DNA of 64,000 nucleotides from Thecamonas trahens ATCC 50062 (lineage: Eukaryota; Protista; Apusomonadida), in NCBI RefSeq assembly GCF_000142905.1, contig NW_013657646.1, positions 309,324 through 373,323 of the forward strand, written 5' to 3'. Under the pieces are notes generated by a model. The model had not been told where the DNA came from. It did not search any database and was given only the letters and a program-made list of their open reading frames with translations. Position numbers and translations under genes: made by a program. Of this stretch, positions 18,430 through 62,949 are shown one piece after another; position 1 is the stretch's first letter; every line of letters begins with the position of its first letter.

Positions 18430-19736
18430 GGTGTGTGGGGTGAGGTGGGTGGGTGGGGTGTGGGTGGGTGGGTGGGTGGGGGGAGTCGTTGGCGGGGAAG
18501 TCGCTGGATTTGGGGTAGACACACACGCACACTCACACACACACGCGCACGCATACATACATGCATGTATACATATACATAGATACATCAATGCGATGGC
18601 AACAATGGGTGGCATGGATGGCGAGTGTGGCGAACTTATCGCGTATCGGTTCGACTATTGCATGATGCTGATGCGATGGCCGATGACGGTCATCACACCC
18701 AGCACCAACCATAGTAACTGCACACAACATCGATACAACGACGACTATATATATGAAACATATCCAACCTTGATCCCCCCCCCCCCCCCCGGTCCCTCTA
18801 CCCCCTTTTTCTGCCCCCCAGCCCCAATCAGCTGCCGCCGTCCCGCCAGCCAAATGGCATCCATTGCCCGTCATTTCTGCTGAACTGGGCACACCTGTAG
18901 CCAGTTGCTCCAGACTGTGCTGCACCCATTCCCTGTGCGCACACCCCACGCCCCCCCCCCCTNNNNNNNNNNNNNNNNNNNNNNNNNNNNNNNNNNNNNN
19001 NNNNNNNNNNNNNNNNNNNNNNNNNNNNNNNNNNNNNNNNNNNNNNNNNNNNNNNNNNNNNNNNNNNNNNNNNNNNNNNNNNNNNNNNNNNNNNNNNNNN
19101 NNNNNNNNNNNNNNNNNNNNNNNNNNNNNNNNNNNNNNNNNNNNNNNNNNNNNNNNNNNNNNNNNNNNNNNNNNNNNNNNNNNNNNNNNNNNNNNNNNNN
19201 NNNNNNNNNNNNNNNNNNNNNNNNNNNNNNNNNNNNNNNNNNNNNNNNNNNNNNNNNNNNNNNNNNNNNNNNNNNNNNNNNNNNNNNNNNNNNNNNNNNN
19301 NNNNNNNNNNNNNNNNNNNNNNNNNNNNNNNNNNNNNNNNNNNNNNNNNNNNNNNNNNNNNNNNNNNNNNNNNNNNNNNNNNNNNNNNNNNNNNNNNNNN
19401 NNNNNNNNNNNNNNNNNNNNNNNNNNNNNNNNNNNNNNNNNNNNNNNNNNNNNNNNNNNNNNNNNNNNNNNNNNNNNNNNNNNNNNNNNNNNNNNNNNNN
19501 NNNNNNNNNNNNNNNNNNNNNNNNNNNNNNNNNNNNNNNNNNNNNNNNNNNNNNNNNNNNNNNNNNNNNNNNNNNNNNNNNNNNNNNNNNNNNNNNNNNN
19601 NNNNNNNNNNNNNNNNNNNNNNNNNNNNNNNNNNNNNNNNNNNNNNNNNNNNNNNNNNNNNNNNNNNNNNNNNNNNNNNNNNNNNNNNNNNNNNNNNNNN
19701 NNNNNNNNNNNNNNNNNNNNCCCCGTCCCCGCCCGC

Positions 19737-26323: not shown

Positions 26324-27084
26324 TCCATCCCATGCCTCCCACCTACCACAGACTATGGATCTTGCATTGAACATGTGTGGTGTGGTGTGTGTTGATCAGC
26401 AGCGGTATTTGATGTGATGTGATGTGATGTGATGGTGGGGCGTCGAGGGAGTCGGTTTGTTGTTGTCGCCAACGGGGCGAGGGGGAGTGGGTGCACTGGT
26501 GCTGGTGCTGGATGCTGGGTGGACGAGACACTGAACTCGTGCGCGACCCAAGGCAGCGACAATGCCTGTGACGCCCACAGCTCGGTATGGCCTTGGAGGA
26601 GGTGGGGGTGGGGGTGGGGGTGGGGGTGGGGGTGGGTGGGTGGGTGGGTGGGGGGGGGGAGGGGAGGTGAGGTGCGGGTCAAGGCGACAGGCGAGGCAGT
26701 GGCGGTTGGTGGCGGGTGCGAGCAAGGCAGAGAGACTGGAGACTGGATTGGGCGGGGACTTATGCGTTTGGGGCTGTGGGCTTGTGTGAGAGGGGATGTA
26801 GGTCGTCGGTGCGTGGGAGAGGAAGAGGTGCAAGGAGGGGAAGGGGAAGAGGCTCGGCTGTAAGTGGACGATGTGGTGCGCGCAAGGCATGGGAGCGGGG
26901 GGCCGCGAGNNNNNNNNNNNNNNNNNNNNNNNNNNNNNNNNNNNNNNNNNNNNNNNNNNNNNNNNNNNNNNNNNNNNNNNNNNNNNNNNNNNNNNNNNNN
27001 NNNNNNNNNGTTTAGGGGGGGGGGCGATGACTGACAAGAGATGATGGATGGATGGGGCGTGGCGCGGGTGGGATGTGCTGATAG

Positions 27085-33794: not shown

Positions 33795-34351
33795 CTCCCC
33801 CCCCTGANNNNNNNNNNNNNNNNNNNNNNNNNNNNNNNNNNNNNNNNNNNNNNNNNNNNNNNNNNNNNNNNNNNNNNNNNNNNNNNNNNNNNNNNNNNNN
33901 NNNNNNNNNNNNNNNNNNNNNNNNNNNNNNNNNNNNNNNNNNNNNNNNNNNNNNNNNNNNNNNNNNNNNNNNNNNNNNNNNTGCCCCCCACCACACACAC
34001 ACCCTGACCACACCAACACACCACTCCACCACACCCTTCCGAGGCAACGTCTCTACTCACTGTTCTCCGAAGAGATTCCCGGGTATCACCCTTCATACTC
34101 CCCACCCCCCCCCCCCAACACCCCCCCCACCCTCTCTCTCGCGCTGCACTCAGCTTGCCGCTCACCTCTCCCAGTTCGCCGCACACCACAACCTGCTCGC
34201 CGCTCGCTACTCGCTACTCGCCACGCACCACTTACTCTCCTGCTGTCGCTGCCGTCATCTTGATTGCGTCGGCTCTGTCTGGGACAACGGTACTCACGTC
34301 AAGGTCTAGATCGCATCCACAGACGCCGCCTGAACTCGATCGTCGCAATCG

Positions 34352-39676: not shown

Positions 39677-39939
39677 GGAGGATGGGAATGGGCCGTGGGG
39701 GCTGGGGGGTGAGGTGGGGGAGAGCTTGGTTGTGGCCGTGGCCACAGCCGTGGCGGAGAGTGGCGGCCGAAGTGGTGGAGGGATCGGAGGCGGCGGCATG
39801 GAGGGGGGGGGGNNNNNNNNNNNNNNNNNNNNNNNNNNNNNNNNNNNNNNNNNNNNNNNNNNNNNNNNNNNNNNNNNNNNNNNNNNNNNNNNNNNNNNNN
39901 NNNNNNNNNNNNGGGGGGAGGTTTGTGAGGAGTGGAGGA

Positions 39940-43764: not shown

Positions 43765-45226
43765 TTAGTCGAGCTTGGAGAGCGAGTTGCGGTAGAGGAT
43801 GGGGTCGTTGGGGATGGACATGCAGCAGAGGGCGCAGGTGGCGGCGAGGAAGACGAGGAGGAGGAAGATCGAGGTCCAGAAGGCGGCCTGCCAGATGCCG
43901 GCGCGCGAGGTGTCGTACGTGGGCGTGGTCGAGTTTCCGAACGAGGTGGCGCGCGGAGCAAGGACGGTGGCGTGCGGCGCAGGGCTCGTCGCGCAGGCGA
44001 TCGATGCCGGCGCCAGCTCGGCCGAGAGCGCCGACGCCGACGCGCAGAGCTGGTCGCGGGCGGCGGGCGGGAGCGAGCGGGAGACAAAGACGTTGGGAAG
44101 GGCCATGCCAAACGAGGCGCCCGAGGCCAGCGAGATGTCACCGACAACCTCGCGGGCGGCATCGGCGAACGCCGCAGTCACGCCGTACGCCGGAGTGGCG
44201 ACCGTGAGCGCGGCAGCGGCGGCGGCGTCGCCGGAGGCAGCGGCAGCAAGGTCGGCCGAGGCTGCGGCGGCAAGATCGGCAAGCGCGGCGGCAAGGCCAG
44301 TCGAGAGCGGTGCGGCCGCGCCGTGGGCGTACTGCGCCTTGGCAAGGCCGGTGAGCGCGAGCGCAAAGACGTCGGGCGTGTCGTCGGCAAGGAGTGCGGC
44401 GAGAGCAGGGAGCTCGCCGGCAGCCAGAGCGCGGGTGAGGCCCGCGGCTGCTGACAGCTCGGCGGCGGCGAGCGCGACTGCGGGATCGTCACTAAAGCGG
44501 GCAACGAGGTCGGCGAGCGCGTGCGGGACCGGCCCAGCGAGGACCGCCGACGGAACGAGCGACTCGTCCGAGNNNNNNNNNNNNNNNNNNNNNNNNNNNN
44601 NNNNNNNNNNNNNNNNNNNNNNNNNNNNNNNNNNNNNNNNNNNNNNNNNNNNNNNNNNNNNNNNNNNNNNNNNNNNNNNNNNNNNNNNNNNNNNNNNNNN
44701 NNNNNNNNNNNNNNNNNNNNNNNNNNNNNNNNNNNNNNNNNNNNNNNNNNNNNNNNNNNNNNNNNNNNNNNNNNNNNNNNNNNNNNNNNNNNNNNNNNNN
44801 NNNNNNNNNNNNNNNNNNNNNNNNNNNNNNNNNNNNNNNNNNNNNNNNNNNNNNNNNNNNNNNNNNNNNNNNNNNNNNNNNNNNNNNNNNNNNNNNNNNN
44901 NNNNNNNNNNNNNNNNNNNNNNNNNNNNNNNNNNNNNNNNNNNNNNNNNNNNNNNNNNNNNNNNNNNNNNNNNNNNNNNNNNNNNNNNNNNNNNNNNNNN
45001 NNNNNNNNNNNNNNNNNNNNNNNNNNNNNNNNNNNNNNNNNNNNNNNNNNNNNNNNNNNNNNNNNNNNNNNNNNNNNNNNNNNNNNNNNNNNNNNNNNNN
45101 NNNNNNNNNNNNNNNNNNNNNNNNNNNNNNNNGGGGGGGGGGGGGAGCGGGCGTACCGCAGACTGCCACCGCGAGGAGGCATGCTGCTGTAAGAGCAGCT
45201 GCAAGGGTACGCAAGTTCATGCGCAT
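43765..45226 (-). CDS. ATP6AP2: ATP6AP2/(pro)renin receptor-like V-ATPase accessory protein; first exon 45226-45157, middle hidden in gap 44573-45132
   Basis: Signal peptide MRMNLRTLAAALTAACLLAVAVC followed by a GTACGC donor. The C-terminal TM and tail WQAAFWTSIFLLLVFLAATCALCCMSIPNDPILYRNSLSKLD match the family W..(TM)..M...D.I.Y(R) motif. Confidence 0.75.
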
Positions 45227-49016: not shown

Positions 49017-50261
49017 TGAACCGCCACGGCACGCAGTCAAAGGCGCGGCCGTGCGCGATACGATGCGCTTTGGCTTGAGGTGATCAACTGACAATACAAC
49101 ACGTGGGATGGCTTGGGATGGGGCGGTGGGGTGGTGGGGTGGAGAGGTGGAAGCATTTGATCACTCATTGCTGATCGCATAAATTCCCACAGTCTATGGA
49201 TGGTGTTCCATAGGGAGTTTACTTGTGACCTGGGGATTTTTCAACTTGTGATCGCTACGATGGGCTCATGGATAGATGGCACATTGTCCCGCAACCGCTA
49301 ATCCTCCATCGATATGCTTGTTGCGAGGCGGCGATGTGCCGTGGCCGACACTTGCGTGCGTGTGGCGACGAGGTAGCGGCGGCGCGTATTTTTTGTGACA
49401 GTTGTCCAGCAGGGGCCTCGGCCAGCTCAACTTTTCCCAAGAAGCAGAGTGTGAGAGGACGGCCACATCGTCTCCCTTCTCGGTGCTCTTTCGAGTCGGG
49501 CACGATGGAGCACGAGCTGGTGCGGTAGACGGTGATGCCTGATCGCCCACAGCGGTGGACGCCACAGTGGGTGTTGCAGCGGTACTACTAAATTTCTTAC
49601 TATCACCCACTGCTCCCCGTTTTACACGCCCAGGCGTGTACGTACCCCTTGCTCCGACGAGAGCCTGCGAGCGACAAGCCGCAATGACGACGCCGTCTGC
49701 CGCAGCGGCCACCACCGCACTCTACCCTACACTCCTAGTACGCCCTCGTCCACCTCCTGTTCATTTCACCACCCCCCACCCTCACCATTACATTCTCCTC
49801 CCCCTTCCCACGCTAACCCCATGCACCCCACGCACCCCCGCTATTAAGCCTTGCCCGCACGTGCGAGTTGGCCATGGCTAGCCCCTCGTGCCGGTTGCCG
49901 CCACCACCACCAACTCACATGTGCGACTTGGTCACTCCCCGCAACCCCCTCCCCCCGCAACCCCCGCCCCTCGCACACACATTGCCTCCCCCCCCCCCCC
50001 CCCCCCTTGCCTGTGGCACAGAGTGGCCATTCCGCAGGTAGTGGGTACGGACCATACGGTGGTGTAGCAGTGGGAGAACGTGAGCAACCGTGGTTGGCAC
50101 TCGAGGCGCAGCATCCGTTCAGCACACCCACAACAACAACCACAACCACAACCACATCAACATCATCATCGTCATCATCACTGACAACAGCGTCGTTGTT
50201 GACTTCAAGCTCGACAAAGGCAGCAGCAGCGGCGGCGACATCAGCAGCATTGACAAGAAAC

Positions 50262-51212
50262 ATGCTTGATCTCTCGGCGCAGAATGGATGGGCCATTGGC
50301 TTTGCTCATCTTGACTCGACCTCGCTCGAGCCCATGTCGATGACTGGCGGCTTTGGCTCGAACTCGGGCACGGCTGGCGGAAACGGAGCTGGCAACCATA
50401 ACCAGGGCCATCTCTCGGCAGATGACATGATGGACGGTTTCACGCTGGTGGACATTGTCAATCAGGCGCCGGTTGCGTTTGACTTTCGCACCCGGTCGAT
50501 CCGGCTCTCGCCGCCGCCAGCCGAGGCCGGCTCGAGAGTCATCGACGACGAGCCGTTTGAGCTCATCGACTTTGTGCCCAAGCTCGAGCAGGGCATCGAG
50601 GGCCTGACCATGCTCTCGGCAGGCTCGCACCACGAGGGGCAGGCAGCGGCGACACCGACGTCAGGGGTGCCTGTCGGGCTTGCCGGCATGAGCGCGGCTC
50701 CCGCTCTGCAGGCGGCGCCGATGCACGTCGCAGCGGCGGCGCCAATCGTGCCCTTGGAGCTTGGCGTCGCGGGCGGGAGCTCGCGCAAGCGCAAGCGCAA
50801 GCGATCGTCGAGCAAGCCGACAACACCACAGAGCGTTGACGCGACCCGGGCACGCGTGCGCGCTGCTGCGTCGCAGGTTCCGGGCGTCACTTTTGTGCCC
50901 GACGAGATGCCGGAGCTTGACGTTGCGCTCGCATCGTCCACCTCGCTCGCCAACGTCCGCATCTGCACAAGCGACCTCTCCAAGAAGGACGCCGACAAGT
51001 TGCGCAAAAAGAAGCATAACGACGTCGAAAAGCAGCGCCGCGTCCGTGAACGCATCGTCATGTCCAAGCTCACTGACCTTGTCAGACCGTTCCTAGGCCT
51101 CAACCCCACCGCCAAGCCCATCAAGCTTGACGTCCTTGAAGGCGCCGCAGACTTTATCGAGCAACTACTTTGCGAGCTACCACCGGCCAAGCGGGCACAT
51201 CTCCTTCAGTAA
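50262..51212 (+). CDS. Basic helix-loop-helix transcription factor (class B basic region, no zipper)
   Basis: C-terminal RKKKHNDVEKQRRVRERIVMSKLTDLV..KPIKLDVLEGAADFIEQL and an NLS RKRKRKR. Start at 50262 is inferred. Confidence 0.85.
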   Translation: MLDLSAQNGWAIGFAHLDSTSLEPMSMTGGFGSNSGTAGGNGAGNHNQGHLSADDMMDGFTLVDIVNQAPVAFDFRTRSIRLSPPPAEAGSRVIDDEPFELIDFVPKLEQGIEGLTMLSAGSHHEGQAAATPTSGVPVGLAGMSAAPALQAAPMHVAAAAPIVPLELGVAGGSSRKRKRKRSSSKPTTPQSVDATRARVRAAASQVPGVTFVPDEMPELDVALASSTSLANVRICTSDLSKKDADKLRKKKHNDVEKQRRVRERIVMSKLTDLVRPFLGLNPTAKPIKLDVLEGAADFIEQLLCELPPAKRAHLLQ

Positions 51213-51531
51213 GCCACAGCAGCCACAGCAACAGCAGCAGGTTTATGACGTGGAGCAGTACACTTGCCGATGTGCGCGCTGCCCGCCATGCATCCCCACC
51301 AACCGTCCTTACGACCCCGTTCATGCGCGGTCCCCCTTGCAAGTTAAAAAATAGGAAAAATGACCCAGTCCAGGCACCCACCCAGCCAGCCACCTGATCA
51401 GCATGTGCGTGCTACCGCCACGCAACAGCGTGACCTACCCCCTCCCCTTCCTCCTCCCCTGCGACGACGGCGACGGGCACCAGTCACACCCCTCGCAGCT
51501 CACGCTTATCAACAAGAACAGCCGTGGGAGC

Positions 51532-52668
51532 ATGAACATGGGTACCTCCACTGTACTTGTGACACTGAGCATGGTCCTCGTCATGGCTAGCCTCGCCTCG
51601 GGACATATCTGTGCTCTGCACCCGGTCCAGCGTGGCGGTGCCAACGTGAGCATTCCTGGGGATCCGAGCTGCTACAAGCGGACAGCTCCGTGTGGTGCGA
51701 CGAGTCATGGCCCACCTTCGGCTACGTATGCACCGGGTTCTATTGTCGAGGTCAACTTCCAGCAGGCGCTCAATCATTGGTACTACGAGAAGCCCGGCCA
51801 TCTGGATGTGGCCATCGCCAGCGGCAACTCGCCGTCAGACTCGGCCTTTACCGTCATCGGCACCCTGCCTGACTTTCCTGCTCATGATCAGGTGTGGCAG
51901 ACCAACTTTACCATGTCGGTCACCATTCCGGCGAGTATGTCTCCAGGCGCTGCGGTGATGCGGTTCCGGTATGTGGCGAACAACCCGGACGAGGCTGTCA
52001 AGGGCAATCCGGACGCCATCTTCTACAACTGCGCCGATGTGCTCATCTCAGCTGCTGCGGGCAAGACCCAGGCCCCGGCTGCTGACGCCCGTCTGGCGGA
52101 GCTCCTTGCCGACGGTCAGCCTCTGGCGAGCACCGCGACGCCTACTGGATGCGAGGCGCCGAAGCAATTTGAGGGCGTCTCGATCCAGGCCGAGGGCACC
52201 GGCGCCATTCTCCGCCGCGCCTACGCCTATGACGCGGTCAACCAGCGGGTCTTTGTCGATCGCCGCGGCACCATTGCCTCGGACAGCAACATTGTGCGTG
52301 AGGCAACGTGGACCGACTACCACGCCATGAAGCAGTGGGTCCTCTTTGAGTACGCCGACTCGACCCCGTCGGTCTGCGAGCTCTACGGACCCGATGCCTT
52401 TTACGCGTGGACATACGGCGACAAGCCCGAGTCGGCCGGGCAGACGTTTGAGGAGCAGGTTCCGGTCGGCGCCTCGCTCGCCAACGTCTGGTCCAACGGG
52501 GTCTTCTGGTGGGCCTCCGAGGCCGAGTCCTGCCTTCCGGTGTGGAAGTACCACCTCAATGGCGCGATGGAGCTCTTCACCAACACTTCGATCGGCATTG
52601 CCGACCCCTCGGTCTTTGACATCCCGTCCATCTGCAACGGTCTCGTTCAGATGAAGCGGTGCTCGTGA
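51532..52668 (+). CDS. Secreted histidine-brace (LPMO-like) domain fused to an ependymin-related (EPDR) domain
   Basis: Signal peptide ending LASG is followed by His1 (HICALHPVQRG), PCG, NH and FYNCADV. The second half carries ependymin motifs CEAPKQFEG, YDAVNQR, CLPV and GIADPSVFDIPSIC. Confidence 0.85.
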   Translation: MNMGTSTVLVTLSMVLVMASLASGHICALHPVQRGGANVSIPGDPSCYKRTAPCGATSHGPPSATYAPGSIVEVNFQQALNHWYYEKPGHLDVAIASGNSPSDSAFTVIGTLPDFPAHDQVWQTNFTMSVTIPASMSPGAAVMRFRYVANNPDEAVKGNPDAIFYNCADVLISAAAGKTQAPAADARLAELLADGQPLASTATPTGCEAPKQFEGVSIQAEGTGAILRRAYAYDAVNQRVFVDRRGTIASDSNIVREATWTDYHAMKQWVLFEYADSTPSVCELYGPDAFYAWTYGDKPESAGQTFEEQVPVGASLANVWSNGVFWWASEAESCLPVWKYHLNGAMELFTNTSIGIADPSVFDIPSICNGLVQMKRCS

Positions 52669-52788: not shown

Positions 52789-55700
52789 ATGGACATGGCA
52801 AGCATGTCAACCAGCAATCTGATGAGTGGAGTGCACCTGGCGGGACTGTCGAACCAGGGCGCCACGTGTTACCTCAATGCCCTCCTCCAAATCCTGTACC
52901 ATACCCCACCGCTGCGGAATGGGGTGCTCAGCCTCTCGCTCGAAGACATGGGTCACACCTCGAGTGAGTACCTGGAATGGCTACTCTCGAACGATGCAGA
53001 GGTGTGGCAGGCAAAGTATGGATCGCTGACGGAGGAAGAGGTCAAGGCTGAGAAGAATGGTGTCGGCGGCAAGGAGATCAAGTCTGGCGAGGACGCTCTT
53101 GATCTGGCCGCCGCTATCGCCGACTCTGAGCCTGTCATGGCAGAGGTGCTGGCCATGGGCCTCGGGCTAGATCCCGAGCTGGTGGTGTACTGTGTGGCAA
53201 AGCATGTACAGAATGCTGCCATTGCTTCGGCTTGCGAAGAGTCGTACGACTTGTTTGCCCTCGGCGGCGCGGATGACTCGAGCGATGACGGCTCCGACGG
53301 GCTCGATGCTGCCGAGCTGACTGCACAGTCGCTGCTGGACATGTGTCTGGATACCGAGTACGCCGAAGAGTACGCCGAGGATGTGGCGGATGGGCGCTGG
53401 GTCGATCCGCGGACGGTGGCGCCGGTGTTTGTGGCCGGAAGTGGGAGCGCCGAGCCCGAGAAAGCCAAGTTCGTGCCGCCACCTCCGGCACCAGACCGTA
53501 TCCGGACCATCCCGTTTGCGCTCCAGCGGCTCTTTGCCGCGCTCTCGCTCCACACCGCAGTGTCGGGCGGGCATGGCGCAGTGACGACCCACTTTCTCAC
53601 CGCGGCCTTTGGCTTCTCAGGGCGCGATGCCGGGGTCCAGCACGACATTGCCGAGCTGACGCGGCTGCTACTGGATGTACTCCAGCGGCAGCTGGTAGGC
53701 AGCGCCATCGAGGGCCTTGTGCCTGGGCTCTATCGCGGCGTGGCAAGTCGGCGCATCTCATGCCTGACCTGCGGCGGATCGCGGTCGACGGAGCAGCCGT
53801 TCCTCGACCTCTCGCTTCCGACCGCGGGGGCAGCATCGCTCGACGCCGCCCTGCTTCAGTGGGGCATGCCCGAGCTGATGGACGGGGCCAATGCTGTGAG
53901 CTGCGAGGCGTGCGACTCGCGCCAGCCGTCGACCATCCGCAACGTCCTCACTCTGCTTCCGCCCGTCCTCACCATCACCCTCAACCGCTACGCCTGGACC
54001 GAGTCTGGCCGCGTCAAGCTCAACGATCCGTTTGCCTTTCCGCTCACGCTTGATATGGCGGCTCTGCTGGACGGCGAGAGCCTTGCGCCCGACGACTCGC
54101 TGCGAGCTGCAGCCGCCGAGCTTGCGGCGACTGGGAGCAGGTCAGAGACGAGCAGCACTCGAGCAAGCGCCGGCGCGGGCGGTGATGACGGCGATGACTT
54201 TGCCTTTTCGTCGTTTGGCCTCTTCTCCGACCCGGCGCCTGTGGCGAGCCCTGAGCCTGACACTGCCGGCGAGCTCTTTGTCTCGCGGCTTGGCGACGCT
54301 GCTCGTGGCGGCTCGCCTGCCGAGTACGAGCTGTTTGGCGTGGTCCTCCACGCCGGCGGCGCCCACGGCGGCCACTACCACGCGCTCATCCGTGACGCCG
54401 AGTCTGGACAGTGGTTTGACTTTAACGACGCGTCGGTCAAGCCCATGCCGCTGGGACAGCTGGTGCGGTCGTACGGGGTCTCGGGCTCGTCGCGCGAGTC
54501 GGCGTACATGCTGTTCTACGCCGCGAGGCTTCCGGACGGGAGCCTAGCGATTGACGTACCGATCATCGACCCGGCGCCTGCACCTACCGCCATTGAGGCA
54601 CATCTCTCGTTCTGGCGGAAGCACCTACGAGCTGCGGCAAGCGCGGCTGCGGCGCGCGAGGCCGCGGAGCGTGCGGCTCGTGGCGAGCGTGCGGCTGCCG
54701 CCGTAGCCGCCCGAAGCTCGCGCGAGGCCACTGCAGCGGCACTGCCGATGCGGCCGGCGATGCGTGTCGTTGAGCGGACGCCACATACGCTCTGCTTTCT
54801 GGTCTACGACGCCGAGTCGGGCGCCATGCTGCCCCCTGTTGTCGCTGACGCGCACAGCCTCGTCGGCTCGCTGGTACAGGACGGCGGCTGGGCGTTTGTG
54901 GGCGCGCTTGTACCGTCGCTGGCCGGCGGCATTGTTGCAGCTGCCACTGATGCAGTCATCGACACGACTTTGTGCGTGGGCGAGTGGCGGCTGGCTGCGC
55001 TCGCCGAGTTTGGTCTGCACGCAAGCATCGGGTGCGCGCTGGCGCATGTGGGTGCGCTTGTTGTGGCTCCAACCGTCACCGACGGCACACCGTGCTTTGC
55101 CGCTGTACCGCAGCTGGCAGCGCGGCGGACGGAGGTGACTGTCTTTGCGGCCGGCAACGGGTTCCGGCTGGCGATGCCGTGCATGCTCTCGATGCACACG
55201 CTCAAGTCGCTGATTGTGGGCTGGCTCAACGACGAGCTCGAGCTCGGACTCTCGCCGCATGCGGTCGGCATTTACGCTTGCAGCACAACTGCAGCACCAG
55301 GCTACTCGGTGGCATGGGCGCTAGAGAGCGGGTCGGATCCGCTGGGCGTGGCGCCAGCGCTCGAGGCTCGCGGCGGCGCAGTTGAGCTCGTCCTGCCGCT
55401 GCTGGCTGACGGCGTGTTTGTGGCCGAGCTCGATGACGTCGACGAGCCGCTGGAGATCCGGGTGGTGGCGCGAAGCGCGGCAAGCCGTGCCAGCGTGTCG
55501 CGCACCGAGCTGGAGGGGGCGATGACGCTGACGCTCTCGTCGATGACGCCGCTGCAGGAGGCGATGTCAAGAGTGGCGGGCGCAGGCGCAACAGACCTGC
55601 CCTCGTTTGTGCTCCGACCGACCGACGCGGGCCTGGTTCCGAGGCCAGACCGCGAAGTGTTCGTGTCGCGAACGCGGGCACTCTCGATGTACCACATCCG

Positions 55701-56508
55701 GCCTCACACTGTGCTTGTGGCGGAGCCAGGTCGTATTGTGGCGCTCGGCCAGATCACGGTCAATGTGGTGCAGTACGCGGGCTATCCCAGCAGCGAGGGC
55801 GGGATTCTCGCGTTTTTCTCACCGGCATACTACACCGAGAGCATGGACGCGCGCGCCAAGGACCTGTTCTCGCCGGCTGCCTCGGTCTCGATCGGAGCCA
55901 CGGCGACGGTTGACGCGCTTTATGATGCTGTGGCGAGCGCACTCTCGGTCGGACCCAACGAGATCCGGCTGTGGGCAACCGGGGCGCGGCTCAAGGGCGG
56001 CTCGACCGGAAACCTCAAGACGGTCGGCATCCGCGACGGCAGCGTTGTGGTGGCACAGGTCGGCGTCGCGCAGACGGCTGGGTCCGACGTCATCCTCCCT
56101 CTCTACGAGCGGAGCGGAACCGACACGGTGCACTTTACCTTTGCCCGTGAGCTTGTTGTTGCCCGTGACGCGGCCAGCGGCGCCATACTCGCATCCGTCG
56201 TCGAGAGCGTCATCGACAGTGCTGCATCTGGCTGCCGCCTCGCCAAGTACGACCAGTATGCCAACACATGGGCTACGATCCGCAAAGCCGACGTGTCCGA
56301 GTGCGAGCCTGTCTTTGCTAACGACGGCGATGTTGTCGTCTACGACGGGCCGAGCCTCGGCGCCGGCATCGGGGACGACGCAGAGCCAACGGTCCCGCTC
56401 CCGCAGCGGGTCCTCCGCTCGAAGAGCGGCTACGTGTTCCACGACATGCTCGCGCTGCCGACCTATCGTGAAGAAGCCGTCTTGCGCATTGATGCTGGCG
56501 GCTGGTGA
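52789..56508 (+). CDS. Ubiquitin-specific protease (peptidase C19, USP40/USP47/USP7-like with C-terminal Ubl-like regions)
   Basis: Cys box GLSNQGATCYLNALLQ, IPFALQRLF, QHD, two CxxC pairs, LPPVLTITLNRY, His box HAGGAHGGHYHALIRD and WFDFND. Confidence 0.93.
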   Translation: MDMASMSTSNLMSGVHLAGLSNQGATCYLNALLQILYHTPPLRNGVLSLSLEDMGHTSSEYLEWLLSNDAEVWQAKYGSLTEEEVKAEKNGVGGKEIKSGEDALDLAAAIADSEPVMAEVLAMGLGLDPELVVYCVAKHVQNAAIASACEESYDLFALGGADDSSDDGSDGLDAAELTAQSLLDMCLDTEYAEEYAEDVADGRWVDPRTVAPVFVAGSGSAEPEKAKFVPPPPAPDRIRTIPFALQRLFAALSLHTAVSGGHGAVTTHFLTAAFGFSGRDAGVQHDIAELTRLLLDVLQRQLVGSAIEGLVPGLYRGVASRRISCLTCGGSRSTEQPFLDLSLPTAGAASLDAALLQWGMPELMDGANAVSCEACDSRQPSTIRNVLTLLPPVLTITLNRYAWTESGRVKLNDPFAFPLTLDMAALLDGESLAPDDSLRAAAAELAATGSRSETSSTRASAGAGGDDGDDFAFSSFGLFSDPAPVASPEPDTAGELFVSRLGDAARGGSPAEYELFGVVLHAGGAHGGHYHALIRDAESGQWFDFNDASVKPMPLGQLVRSYGVSGSSRESAYMLFYAARLPDGSLAIDVPIIDPAPAPTAIEAHLSFWRKHLRAAASAAAAREAAERAARGERAAAAVAARSSREATAAALPMRPAMRVVERTPHTLCFLVYDAESGAMLPPVVADAHSLVGSLVQDGGWAFVGALVPSLAGGIVAAATDAVIDTTLCVGEWRLAALAEFGLHASIGCALAHVGALVVAPTVTDGTPCFAAVPQLAARRTEVTVFAAGNGFRLAMPCMLSMHTLKSLIVGWLNDELELGLSPHAVGIYACSTTAAPGYSVAWALESGSDPLGVAPALEARGGAVELVLPLLADGVFVAELDDVDEPLEIRVVARSAASRASVSRTELEGAMTLTLSSMTPLQEAMSRVAGAGATDLPSFVLRPTDAGLVPRPDREVFVSRTRALSMYHIRPHTVLVAEPGRIVALGQITVNVVQYAGYPSSEGGILAFFSPAYYTESMDARAKDLFSPAASVSIGATATVDALYDAVASALSVGPNEIRLWATGARLKGGSTGNLKTVGIRDGSVVVAQVGVAQTAGSDVILPLYERSGTDTVHFTFARELVVARDAASGAILASVVESVIDSAASGCRLAKYDQYANTWATIRKADVSECEPVFANDGDVVVYDGPSLGAGIGDDAEPTVPLPQRVLRSKSGYVFHDMLALPTYREEAVLRIDAGGW

Positions 56509-58445: not shown

Positions 58446-59117
58446 CGAGTCGCCGTTTCGGCCCCAGCCGCCAACCGCCACCGACCGCCACCGACCGCCA
58501 CCAACCCCTTCCTCTCACCACCCCCCACCCCACCTCACCCCACCTCACCCCACCCCATCCCCCCCCCCCCCCCGGNNNNNNNNNNNNNNNNNNNNNNNNN
58601 NNNNNNNNNNNNNNNNNNNNNNNNNNNNNNNNNNNNNNNNNNNNNNNNNNNNNNNNNNNNNNNNNNNNNNNNNNNNNNNNNNNNNNNNNNNNNNNNNNNN
58701 NNNNNNNNNNNNNNNNNNNNNNNNNNNNNNNNNNNNNNNNNNNNNNNNNNNNNNNNNNNNNNNNNNNNNNNNNNNNNNNNNNNNNNNNNNNNNNNNNNNN
58801 NNNNNNNNNNNNNNNNNNNNNNNNNNNNNNNNNNNNNNNNNNNNNNNNNNNNNNNNNNNNNNNNNNNNNNNNNNNNNNNNNNNNNNNNNNNNNNNNNNNN
58901 NNNNNNNNNNNNNNNNNNNNNNNNNNNNNNNNNNNNNNNNNNNNNNNNNNNNNNNNNNNNNNNNNNNNNNNNNNNNNNNNNNNNNNNNNNNNNNNTCACC
59001 CCTTCCCTACCTAACCCCAACCCCCCAACCCCCACCCTACCCTACCCCTACCCTACCCACCCCACCCCACCCCCCCCACCCCCCCCCCCCCACCCCCCAC
59101 CACACACACACTTGTCC

Positions 59118-61372: not shown

Positions 61373-62949
61373 CTACGCAGCCGGGCGCTTGATGACAAGC
61401 GCCGACGCACCGCCGCCGCCGTTGCAGATGCCGGCAATGCCGACCGACTTGCCCTCGCGAATCAGGGCGTTGAGCAGGGTGACGACGATGCGAGCGCCGG
61501 AGCAGCCGAGCGGGTGGCCGATGGAGACGGCGCCACCGTAGATGTTGACCTTGGCGTCGTCGAGGCCGAGCAGGGCCATGTTGGCGAGGGCAACGACGGC
61601 AAAGGCCTCGTTGATCTCGACAAGGTCGGCGTCGGCGAGCTCGATGCCGGCTCGCTTGCAGGCGACCGGGATGGCATGGGCCGGTGAGGTGGTAAACTTG
61701 GCCGGATCCTGCGAAGCGTCGCCCATGCCCTCGATGGTAGCGTAAACGGTGAGGCCGAGCTCGGCGGCCTTGGCCTCCGAGGCGAGGATGACAGCGGCGG
61801 CACCGTCTGAGATGGTCGAGGCGTTGCCGGCGGTCACGGTGCCGTCGCGCTTGAAGACGGTGCGGAGCGAGGGGAACTTGGCCGGGTTGAACCGGGCCGG
61901 CTCGTCATCGGCGTCGACCACGGTCTCGCCCTTGCGCGACTTGATGACGACCGGCACAATCTCGTCGGCAAAGACCCCGCGTCGGCAGCCGCGCGGGCAC
62001 GCTCGTACGACTGGATGGCGTAGGCGTCCTGCTCCTCACGCGAGATGCCGTGCTCCTCGGCGCACTCCTCGGCGAGGCAGCCCATGGCCTGATCGCCATA
62101 CGGATCCGTGAGCCCGTCCGACGCACACGAATCGCGGAGCTCCGAGTTGCCGTAGCGGAGGCCGCCCCGGGTCGCGGCAGGGAGGAGGAACGGCGCGCCG
62201 GTCATCGACTCCATGCCGCCGGCCACCACCAGATCGGACTGGCCGATGAGAATGGATGCAGCCGCCACGTGGATGGCCTTCATGCCCGACGAGCAGACCT
62301 TGTTGACAGAGGTGCACGGGACAGACGGCAGGATGCCGGCCTTGAGCGCAGCCTGCTTGGCAGGCGCCTGACCCACACCCGCCGAGAGCACATGGCCCAT
62401 GTACACCTCCTGCACGGCCTCGGCCGCCACACCAGCACGCTCGAGTGCACCCTTGATCGCCACCGCCCCGAGCTCGGGAGCCGTCTGGGACGCAAGCGAG
62501 CCCGAAAGCCCGCCCATCGCCGTCCGGGCGTAACCCACGATGCAGACTGTGAAGGGGGGGGGGTGAGTGGGGCGGGGGAAGAGAGGAGAANNNNNNNNNN
62601 NNNNNNNNNNNNNNNNNNNNNNNNNNNNNNNNNNNNNNNNNNNNNNNNNNNNNNNNNNNNNNNNNNNNNNNNNNNNNNNNNNNNNNNNNNNNNNNNNNNN
62701 NNNNNNNNNNNNNNNNNNNNNNNNNNNNNNNNNNNNNNNNNNNNNNNNNNNNNNNNNNNNNNNNNNNNNNNNNNNNNNNNNNNNNNNNNNNNNNNNNNNN
62801 NNNNNNNNNNNNNNNNNNNNNNNNNNNNNNNNNNNNNNNNNNNNNNNNNNNNNNNNNNNNNNNNNNNNNNNNNNNNNNNNNNNNNNNNNNNNNNNNNNNN
62901 NNNNNNNNNNNGGGGGGGAAGAAGGGGGCTTACCCTTGTTGGAAGCCAT
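61373..62949 (-). CDS. ACAT: Acetyl-CoA acetyltransferase (biosynthetic thiolase, ERG10/ACAT type); exons 62949-62934 and 62546-61373, 1-nt deletion at ~61976
   Basis: MASNK, intron GTAAGC..CACAG, then VCIVGYART, GQAPAKQA, VNKVCSSGMKA, VAGGMESM, TAGNASTISDGAAA, EINEAF, GHPLGCSGARI and ICNGGGGASA. Confidence 0.96.

Follow-up and report, generated by a model that had tools for sequence, protein, structure and literature searches.

Which function could be served by a protein that joins the copper-binding fold of lytic polysaccharide monooxygenases (LPMOs) to the lipid-binding fold of ependymin-related proteins (EPDRs)? The question is raised by a gene at 51532-52668 (plus strand) of the window, a 64,000-nucleotide stretch of contig NW_013657646.1 from Thecamonas trahens ATCC 50062, to which all coordinates below refer. 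The gene was translated as one stop-free open reading frame (ORF) of 378 aa, and its product displayed 100% identity to T. trahens AMSG_07381. The N-terminal half belonged to a separate LPMO-fold family, outside AA9, AA10, AA11, AA15, and X325; the C-terminal half was securely assigned as a genuine EPDR domain with LolA fold; and the pairing of the two was old and conserved, being found in several eukaryotic supergroups. Judged from its sequence, the product is a soluble two-domain protein, predicted to be secreted or endolysosomal. As to function, our tentative preference, which falls somewhat short of probable, is a secreted fusion of an oxidative LPMO-type copper module with an EPDR targeting domain. 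The gene had the following features:

51532..51603, plus strand: signal peptide (precursor residues 1-24), a hydrophobic presequence ending in Ala-Ser-Gly before His, with predicted cleavage

51604..52053, plus strand: histidine-brace-like domain with the LPMO fold (mature residues 1-150), a beta-sandwich according to AlphaFold and Foldseek

51604..51606, plus strand: mature His1 (precursor His25), proposed from conservation as a brace ligand by way of both its amino group and its side chain

51775..51777, plus strand: His58 (precursor His82) of the QQNLNH motif, proposed from conservation and spacing as the second brace ligand

51871..51873, plus strand: Asp90 (precursor Asp114), an invariant carboxylate (72/72)

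51991..51993, plus strand: Glu130 (precursor Glu154), an invariant carboxylate (72/72) and candidate second-sphere Glu/Gln, its role being inferred only

52012..52014, plus strand: Asp137 (precursor Asp161), an X325-type ligand candidate of an earlier note; Asp in 32/69 and thus not a conserved ligand

52021..52023, plus strand: Phe140 (precursor Phe164) of the F-Y-x-C-[AS]-D motif, proposed axial residue (72/72)

52054..52143, plus strand: linker rich in Ala and Pro, predicted to contain a short helix (precursor residues 175-204)

52144..52665, plus strand: EPDR (LolA-fold) domain (precursor residues 205-378), from phmmer, family profile, Foldseek, and Cys pattern

52660-52662, plus strand: extra Cys377, located after the last EPDR cysteine

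52666..52668, plus strand: stop codon

An earlier note, made from the DNA sequence, had described an ORF at 51532-52668 with a His following a presequence (codon 51604) and a second His within LNHW (51775), and both were confirmed by translation, the LNHW motif starting from residue 80. The PDAIFYNCADV stretch with which it ended the domain was also present, but at 52009-52041, slightly before the ~52047 given there; FYNCADV started from residue 164 (52021). The EPDR-type motifs CEAPKQFEG, YDAVNQR, CLPV, and ADPSVFDIPSIC were all found in the ORF, with TGCEAP from 52144. The ORF stayed open further upstream to an ATG at 51403, which was used as the start of the 396-aa NCBI model of AMSG_07381; that model removed part of the leader by a predicted intron and placed 18 extra hydrophilic residues ahead of the signal peptide (window 51403-51531). 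The Met at 51532 was considered the likelier start, because the conserved His of orthologues was preceded by 11-42 residues (median 20); the cleavage site of the signal peptide was identical whichever start was taken.

His occupied position 1 in 134/134 complete domains collected, and 122/122 Met-initiated relatives had A, G, S, or C at -1 and a small or aliphatic residue at -3. On the -3/-1 rule plus this conservation, cleavage by signal peptidase is predicted to leave His as mature residue 1. The precursor ended in ...VQMKRCS without a hydrophobic tail, and hence no glycosylphosphatidylinositol (GPI) signal was present.

The sequence of the N-terminal domain alone (115-sequence alignment) was modelled by AlphaFold with a predicted local distance difference test score (pLDDT) of 95.8 and a predicted template modelling score (pTM) of 0.89, and the full-length protein (72-sequence alignment) with pLDDT 92.3 and pTM 0.88. 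Foldseek comparison of the N-terminal domain with PDB gave LPMOs for all of the best 50 matches listed, at probability 1.00; together with the conserved His1, second His, and late-strand Phe, this upheld the earlier assignment of the N-terminal half as LPMO-like. AA11 came first among these 50 matches (AoAA11 4mai/4mah, AfAA11B 9exj, and 7p3u), with E values from 8e-6 to 1e-4 (9exj at 8.2e-6) and query template modelling scores (TMq) of 0.55-0.60 (7p3u at 0.60), followed by AA9, AA10 (CBP21 2bem, 6.6e-5), AA15, and AA16. X325 structures were absent among the 50 matches listed, and the likeness to X325 suggested earlier was not supported at the level of fold, where AA11, AA9, and AA10 were nearest.

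At the sequence level the domain stood apart from each of these families. Pfam scores of the window protein were 22.1 bits for BIM1-like (threshold 27) and 18.5 bits for AA9 (threshold 27.8), and there was no LPMO_10 match at E<=1. The phmmer search against PDB placed LPMO9F at a sub-threshold 2e-3; a profile of the N-terminal domain only matched no LPMO in PDB, giving chance matches only; deeper profiles gave only marginal matches to AA10 (7okr, 0.0022) and AA15 (5msz, 0.39 and 0.82); and none of the AA11 chains in PDB was detected by sequence profiles. The match to 7okr (AsLPMO10B, E 0.0022) lined up the F-Y-x-C-x-D motif of the family with FYNCSD of this AA10 LPMO. Across 72 members of the fusion family, Pfam matches at E<=0.01 were BIM1-like in 41/72 (best E 7.3e-9), LPMO_10 in 16/72, and Ependymin in 11/72. 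Directly after the signal peptide, the family displayed the signature H-[ILVM]-C-x3-P-x-Q-R-G. The domain was regarded as a separate LPMO-fold family because it passed no Pfam threshold, had 18-20% identity to AA11, and carried signature motifs of its own. Its LPMO likeness is not wholly new, since UniRef automatically named both AMSG_07381 and its Chromera orthologue "Chitin-binding type-4 domain-containing protein".

Compared to AA11, the T. trahens domain shared a small LPMO beta-sandwich, a near-equal spacing of site residues, secretion, and a His1 exposed by signal-peptide cleavage, but it differed in its low identity (18-20%), in having Phe instead of Tyr as the axial residue, and in the Ala two residues before it. 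To our knowledge, AA11 proteins are fungal chitin-active enzymes and none has an EPDR partner. Compared to AA10/LPMO_10 (CBP21 2bem and AsLPMO10B 7okr), it shared the F-Y-x-C-x-D motif of the terminal strand and likewise had Phe as the axial residue, but the long L2 region of AA10 was represented by only ~33 residues with one Cys pair, and the H-[ILV]-C-x3-P-x-Q-R-G and QQNLNH motifs were particular to the N-terminal domain family of the fusion.

The candidate copper site was delimited by conservation among the aligned relatives (mature numbering): His1 57/57, Cys3 55/55, His58 67/68, Cys143 71/72, Asp145 68/71, and Asp90, Tyr123, Glu130, and Phe140 72/72 each; two-exon orthologues (L001 and L005) had entered the alignment exon by exon, as separate rows. 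His58 closed the QQNLNH motif (Gln53-Gln54-Asn55-Leu56-Asn57-His58) in the loop following strand 47-54, Phe140 opened strand 139-148, Asp90 had the context D-[FYW]-P-A, and the aromatic residues adjoining His58 and Asp90 were conserved. The active sites of AoAA11 and CBP21 are His1/His60/Tyr140 and His28/His114/Phe187, respectively (PMC5094447), and the His1/His58/Phe140 spacing of the T. trahens protein mirrored that of AoAA11. Because of fold, spacing, and conservation, His1 and His58 were read as the putative brace and Phe140 as the putative axial residue. Glu130 is a candidate for the second-sphere Glu/Gln that is typical of LPMOs, and Asp90 could be either a second-sphere residue or a fourth ligand. 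Asp137 (precursor Asp161), three residues before the Phe, had been proposed as a third ligand of X325 type; this residue was Asp in only 32/69, being otherwise Gly, Gln, Glu, Asn, or Ser, and was rejected.

These residues bear on two alternatives. The first is a non-catalytic binding or adhesion protein, in which the LPMO fold, metal-bound or not, would serve only to bind glycans and the EPDR half would act as in extracellular ependymins. It would agree with the "Chitin-binding type-4" name in UniRef, with the first description of LPMO-fold proteins as chitin-binding proteins, and with the conserved aromatics beside His58 and Asp90; however, if there were no metal site, one could hardly account for a His directly after the signal peptide in 134/134 domains, plus His58 and Phe140, and we hold such a protein to be very unlikely.

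The second alternative, which is unlikely but carries more weight, is a copper carrier or scavenger of Bim1/X325 (PF20238) kind, in which a brace plus carboxylate would bind Cu(II) tightly in a redox-inert form and the protein would collect or hand over copper; in an equally unlikely elaboration, the protein would be attached through its EPDR domain to membranes in the vicinity of a transporter, this domain replacing the GPI anchor of Bim1. X325 is reported from fungi. Like the T. trahens domain, X325/Bim1 is a small LPMO-like domain with His1 and a second His; neither has a proven polysaccharide substrate; and BIM1-like was the commonest Pfam match in the family (41/72, best E 7.3e-9), with one animal protein of the sister clade (see below) above threshold. 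The invariant Asp90 and Glu130 could moreover give a fourth ligand, and X325/Bim1 proteins have a His brace plus Asp and no polysaccharide activity (PMC7529816; PMC7924993). Against a carrier, the 50 fold matches listed were all catalytic-type LPMOs or AA16 and none X325; the window protein lay under the BIM1-like threshold (22.1 < 27); Asp161 was not conserved; the GPI anchor of X325/Bim1 had no counterpart signal in the T. trahens protein, whose C-terminus was the EPDR domain; Asp90 lay in D-[FYW]-P-A, whereas the Asp copper ligand of X325/Bim1 is found on a Gly-rich loop (PMC7529816); and the invariant axial Phe and F-Y-x-C-x-D motif were AA10-like.

The C-terminal half was claimed as ependymin-type in the earlier note, and comparisons of sequence and fold agreed with this: in a phmmer search of PDB, residues 203-371 matched EPDR1 6jla at 5.1e-8, and EPDR1 of mouse, human, and frog was matched at 5e-8 to 5e-6 over residues 203-375; the fusion-family profile brought the EPDR1 match to 1.7e-14 and aligned all four Cys; and Foldseek of the full-length model matched EPDR1 at 3.6e-11 with target template modelling scores (TMt) of 0.63-0.70, followed by the sponge carotenoprotein EPD-BCP1, VioE, RseB, and LolA-superfamily proteins. 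Cys207, Cys282, Cys334, and Cys368 (mature Cys183, Cys258, Cys310, and Cys344) were 96-100% conserved in the family, and Pro336 (mature Pro312), which forms Cys-x-Pro with Cys334, was 98% conserved. Human EPDR1 has the disulfides C42/C172 and C113/C210, conserved across EPDR clades (PMC6363788), and "profile 1" of McDougall et al. consists of four cysteines with Cys-x-Pro (PMC6280359); the Cys pattern of the fusion equalled both. The likeness to EPDRs (human, mouse, and frog EPDR1 and sponge EPD-BCP1) thus covered whole-domain sequence and fold, the four Cys, Cys-x-Pro, and the LolA-type fold, but EPDRs as described stand alone, measure ~200 aa, and have a signal peptide of their own (PMC6280359), while the fusion domain made up the C-terminal half of a 378-aa precursor. 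Pfam Ependymin (PF00811) scored 19.4-20.7 bits against a threshold of 32.3 and covered the last ~40 residues only, which is probably why the domain was overlooked.

A fifth cysteine, Cys377, was shared by 35/54 relatives; disulfide-linked dimers are reported for fish ependymins (PMC6280359), and by analogy Cys377, if unpaired, could form such a dimer. The linker between the two domains was modelled at pLDDT ~70 and contained a helix spanning mature residues 160-169, and the distance from the last Cys of the N-terminal domain to the first EPDR Cys was 13-89 residues across the family (median 37).

The extent of the family was assessed by an exhaustive HMMER profile search of 1.84 billion representative sequences, giving 540 matches at E<=1e-3 and 110 at E<=1e-30; as the 399-position profile included the EPDR half of one relative (P0003), the matches were afterwards domain-sorted by jackhmmer. 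Word-index homology searches recovered six full-length relatives, three relatives for the N-terminal domain, and none for the EPDR domain alone, and these searches therefore understate the family. Among 165 sequences collected for domain sorting, 77 had the N-terminal domain followed by EPDR (75 with one N-domain match and two split), the others being ~45-48 long proteins with a different ~350-aa C-terminal region and short fragments. Fusion members included those from Vermistella antarctica (Amoebozoa), Entosiphon sulcatum (euglenid), Rhynchopus euleeides (diplonemid), Chromera velia (A0A0G4GIE3), and transcripts of the Marine Microbial Eukaryote Transcriptome Sequencing Project (MMETSP), thereby spanning Amorphea, Discoba, and Alveolata; the Vermistella, Entosiphon, Rhynchopus, and MMETSP sequences were transcriptome-derived, and that of Chromera velia was a gene model. 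Since several fusions were assembled transcripts, a single mRNA was supported. A scan with the QQNLNH pattern, limited to that pattern, found no bacterial, archaeal, or viral relatives.

The fusion architecture claimed at the outset therefore stood, as a single ORF whose domain order was kept across protist supergroups in 77/165 relatives. An artefact, whether from the merging of two adjacent genes or from chance likeness, might be feared from the imperfect gene models of the T. trahens genome and the doubtful 5' end of the NCBI model, but the ORF ran on without stop or gap (no N runs, i.e., assembly gaps, lay inside the gene), both halves were modelled at high confidence, and the same domain order recurred in 77 relatives including assembled transcripts. 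The gene merge was rejected on the continuous ORF, the lack of a gap, and the shared architecture, and an artefact of any kind is scarcely credible.

In the tree of N-terminal domains, the alternative architecture formed one clade with a Shimodaira-Hasegawa-like approximate likelihood ratio test (SH-aLRT) value of 98, and a single change separated the two architectures. The proteins of this sister clade (470-570 aa) harbored the same domain with His after the signal peptide and the same invariant residues, followed by a ~350-aa non-EPDR region with the motifs YVNF-x-W, G-x-EN, SPGL, and DP-x-TG, for which no Pfam match and no PDB sequence match was found. Its members included those from Owenia fusiformis (annelid; CAH1799035.1), Sycon ciliatum (sponge; XP_065183233.1), and Ancoracysta twista, together with L005:4025-5971. 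Two sister-clade scores passed the LPMO_10 threshold (27.0 and 26.3 > 23), and one animal protein passed that of BIM1-like (27.8 > 27).

Under the preferred reading, His1 (amino group and side chain) and His58 would hold one copper ion with Phe140 beneath it, in AA10 manner, and a Cys3-Cys143 disulfide adjoining the site residues would probably stiffen the site. The copper domain would most likely be an oxidative LPMO-type module, which is reduced and then uses O2 or H2O2 against a glycan. EPDR1, which possesses a hydrophobic groove, binds liposomes of anionic lipids (PMC6363788), and the corresponding groove of the fusion may take up a lipid or a lipid-anchored glycan or attach to a membrane surface; it would thereby position the copper site on envelope or membrane-bound substrates, e.g., in prey digestion or cell-surface remodelling, a role comparable to that of a carbohydrate-binding module, but for hydrophobic ligands.

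Several points weigh against this oxidative, membrane-targeted module: (i) sequence resemblance to BIM1/X325, a non-catalytic copper-carrier family, was more frequent than that to LPMO_10; (ii) Ala occupied the position two before the axial Phe, which is often Gln or Glu in AA9, AA10, and AA11; (iii) the invariance of Asp90 and Glu130 leaves room for a closed X325-like fourth ligand; (iv) prey digestion is not a general explanation, because the photosynthetic Chromera is a member; and (v) the neighbours gave no support from context, being uninformative on function. These neighbours, on the same strand and both apparently intron-free, encoded a basic helix-loop-helix (bHLH) DNA-binding protein (49851-51212; HLH, E 2.2e-5) and a 1239-aa ubiquitin C-terminal hydrolase of ubiquitin-specific protease (USP) type (52789-56508; UCH, E 2.3e-43).

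The two halves could also be coupled more tightly. The copper site might be held against the protein's own EPDR groove and oxidise a lipid or lipid-anchored glycan rather than crystalline polysaccharide, which would make a new kind of histidine-brace enzyme; this bolder proposal is decidedly unlikely. Less probable still is a copper (per)oxygenase acting on the hydrophobic ligand of its own EPDR (lipid, sterol, carotenoid, or lipid-linked glycan), with rigid packing and the site facing the groove. The full-length pTM of 0.88, reached despite a low-confidence linker, suggests a defined inter-domain arrangement; the LolA-fold matches included the enzyme VioE and the carotenoid binder EPD-BCP1; and the pairing was strictly conserved, with one change on the N-domain tree. 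The linker, however, varied from 13 to 89 residues, and we know of no histidine-brace enzyme that acts on lipids.

The pairing of an LPMO fold with EPDR appears not to have been described before. In the literature that could be searched, no paper was found that links ependymin with LPMO, Thecamonas with LPMO, or histidine brace with LolA fold; the earlier claim of an undescribed fusion stands in this respect, but it must be qualified by the automatic "Chitin-binding type-4" name that the N-terminal domain already bears in UniRef. McDougall et al., in their survey of EPDRs, report for T. trahens only XP_013758084.1, the product of another gene that encodes a stand-alone EPDR, and AMSG_07381 was missed. 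What is added is a new family of the LPMO fold, together with a conserved partner domain that is likewise new. Each new histidine-brace family has so far shifted ideas on what such copper sites do: with LPMOs the view of biomass degradation was transformed, and X325/Bim1 brought to light a function in copper uptake. The fusion family was kept in protists of at least three supergroups and its sister clade reached sponges and annelids. Decades of work have left the biochemical function of ependymin-related proteins unclear, and the conserved covalent link to a probable copper redox domain offers a concrete, testable hypothesis for both halves, namely oxidative chemistry aimed at hydrophobic or membrane-bound substrates. 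Were the copper site indeed placed against the EPDR groove, the ependymin fold would gain a substrate-delivery role and, together with the animal-containing sister clade, a eukaryote-wide uncharacterised branch of LPMO-fold copper proteins would emerge. For annotation, the family was large, yet it looked rare or unannotated under short-word homology searches and Pfam thresholds.

Three relatives, P0084 (461 aa), P0128, and P0120, had the LPMO-like domain in an internal or C-terminal position; in P0084 it came after a PA14 domain, residue 319 being the 'His1'. The internal His of such proteins could form a brace only after proteolytic processing, or these could be gene-model errors.

The marine-metagenome orthologue L001 had its signal peptide and His1 on an exon upstream of an intron (L001:2559-2805), which contained a CA-type dinucleotide microsatellite and a pyrimidine-rich tract that in frame read as His-Ser repeats and proline-rich text; because of this in-frame repeat content, the automatic gene call missed exon 1 with the signal peptide and His1.

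Downstream of another fusion orthologue, P0011 (L007:3001-5322; GCA_027487435.1, JAIYDP010000152.1), at a distance of 88 bp and on the same strand, lay a gene for a cathepsin-type cysteine protease (Propeptide_C1 plus Peptidase_C1, E 1.4e-55), a weak hint of an endolysosomal or digestive setting, or a chance neighbour.

Within the T. trahens window, no second copy of either domain was found. The surrounding sequence was eukaryotic, with 61-68% G+C and several assembly gaps, recognized as N runs at 18963-19720, 26910-27009, 33808-33981, 39813-39912, 44573-45132, 58576-58995, and 62591-62911; the apparent low-G+C blocks in the composition profile of the window were due to these runs.

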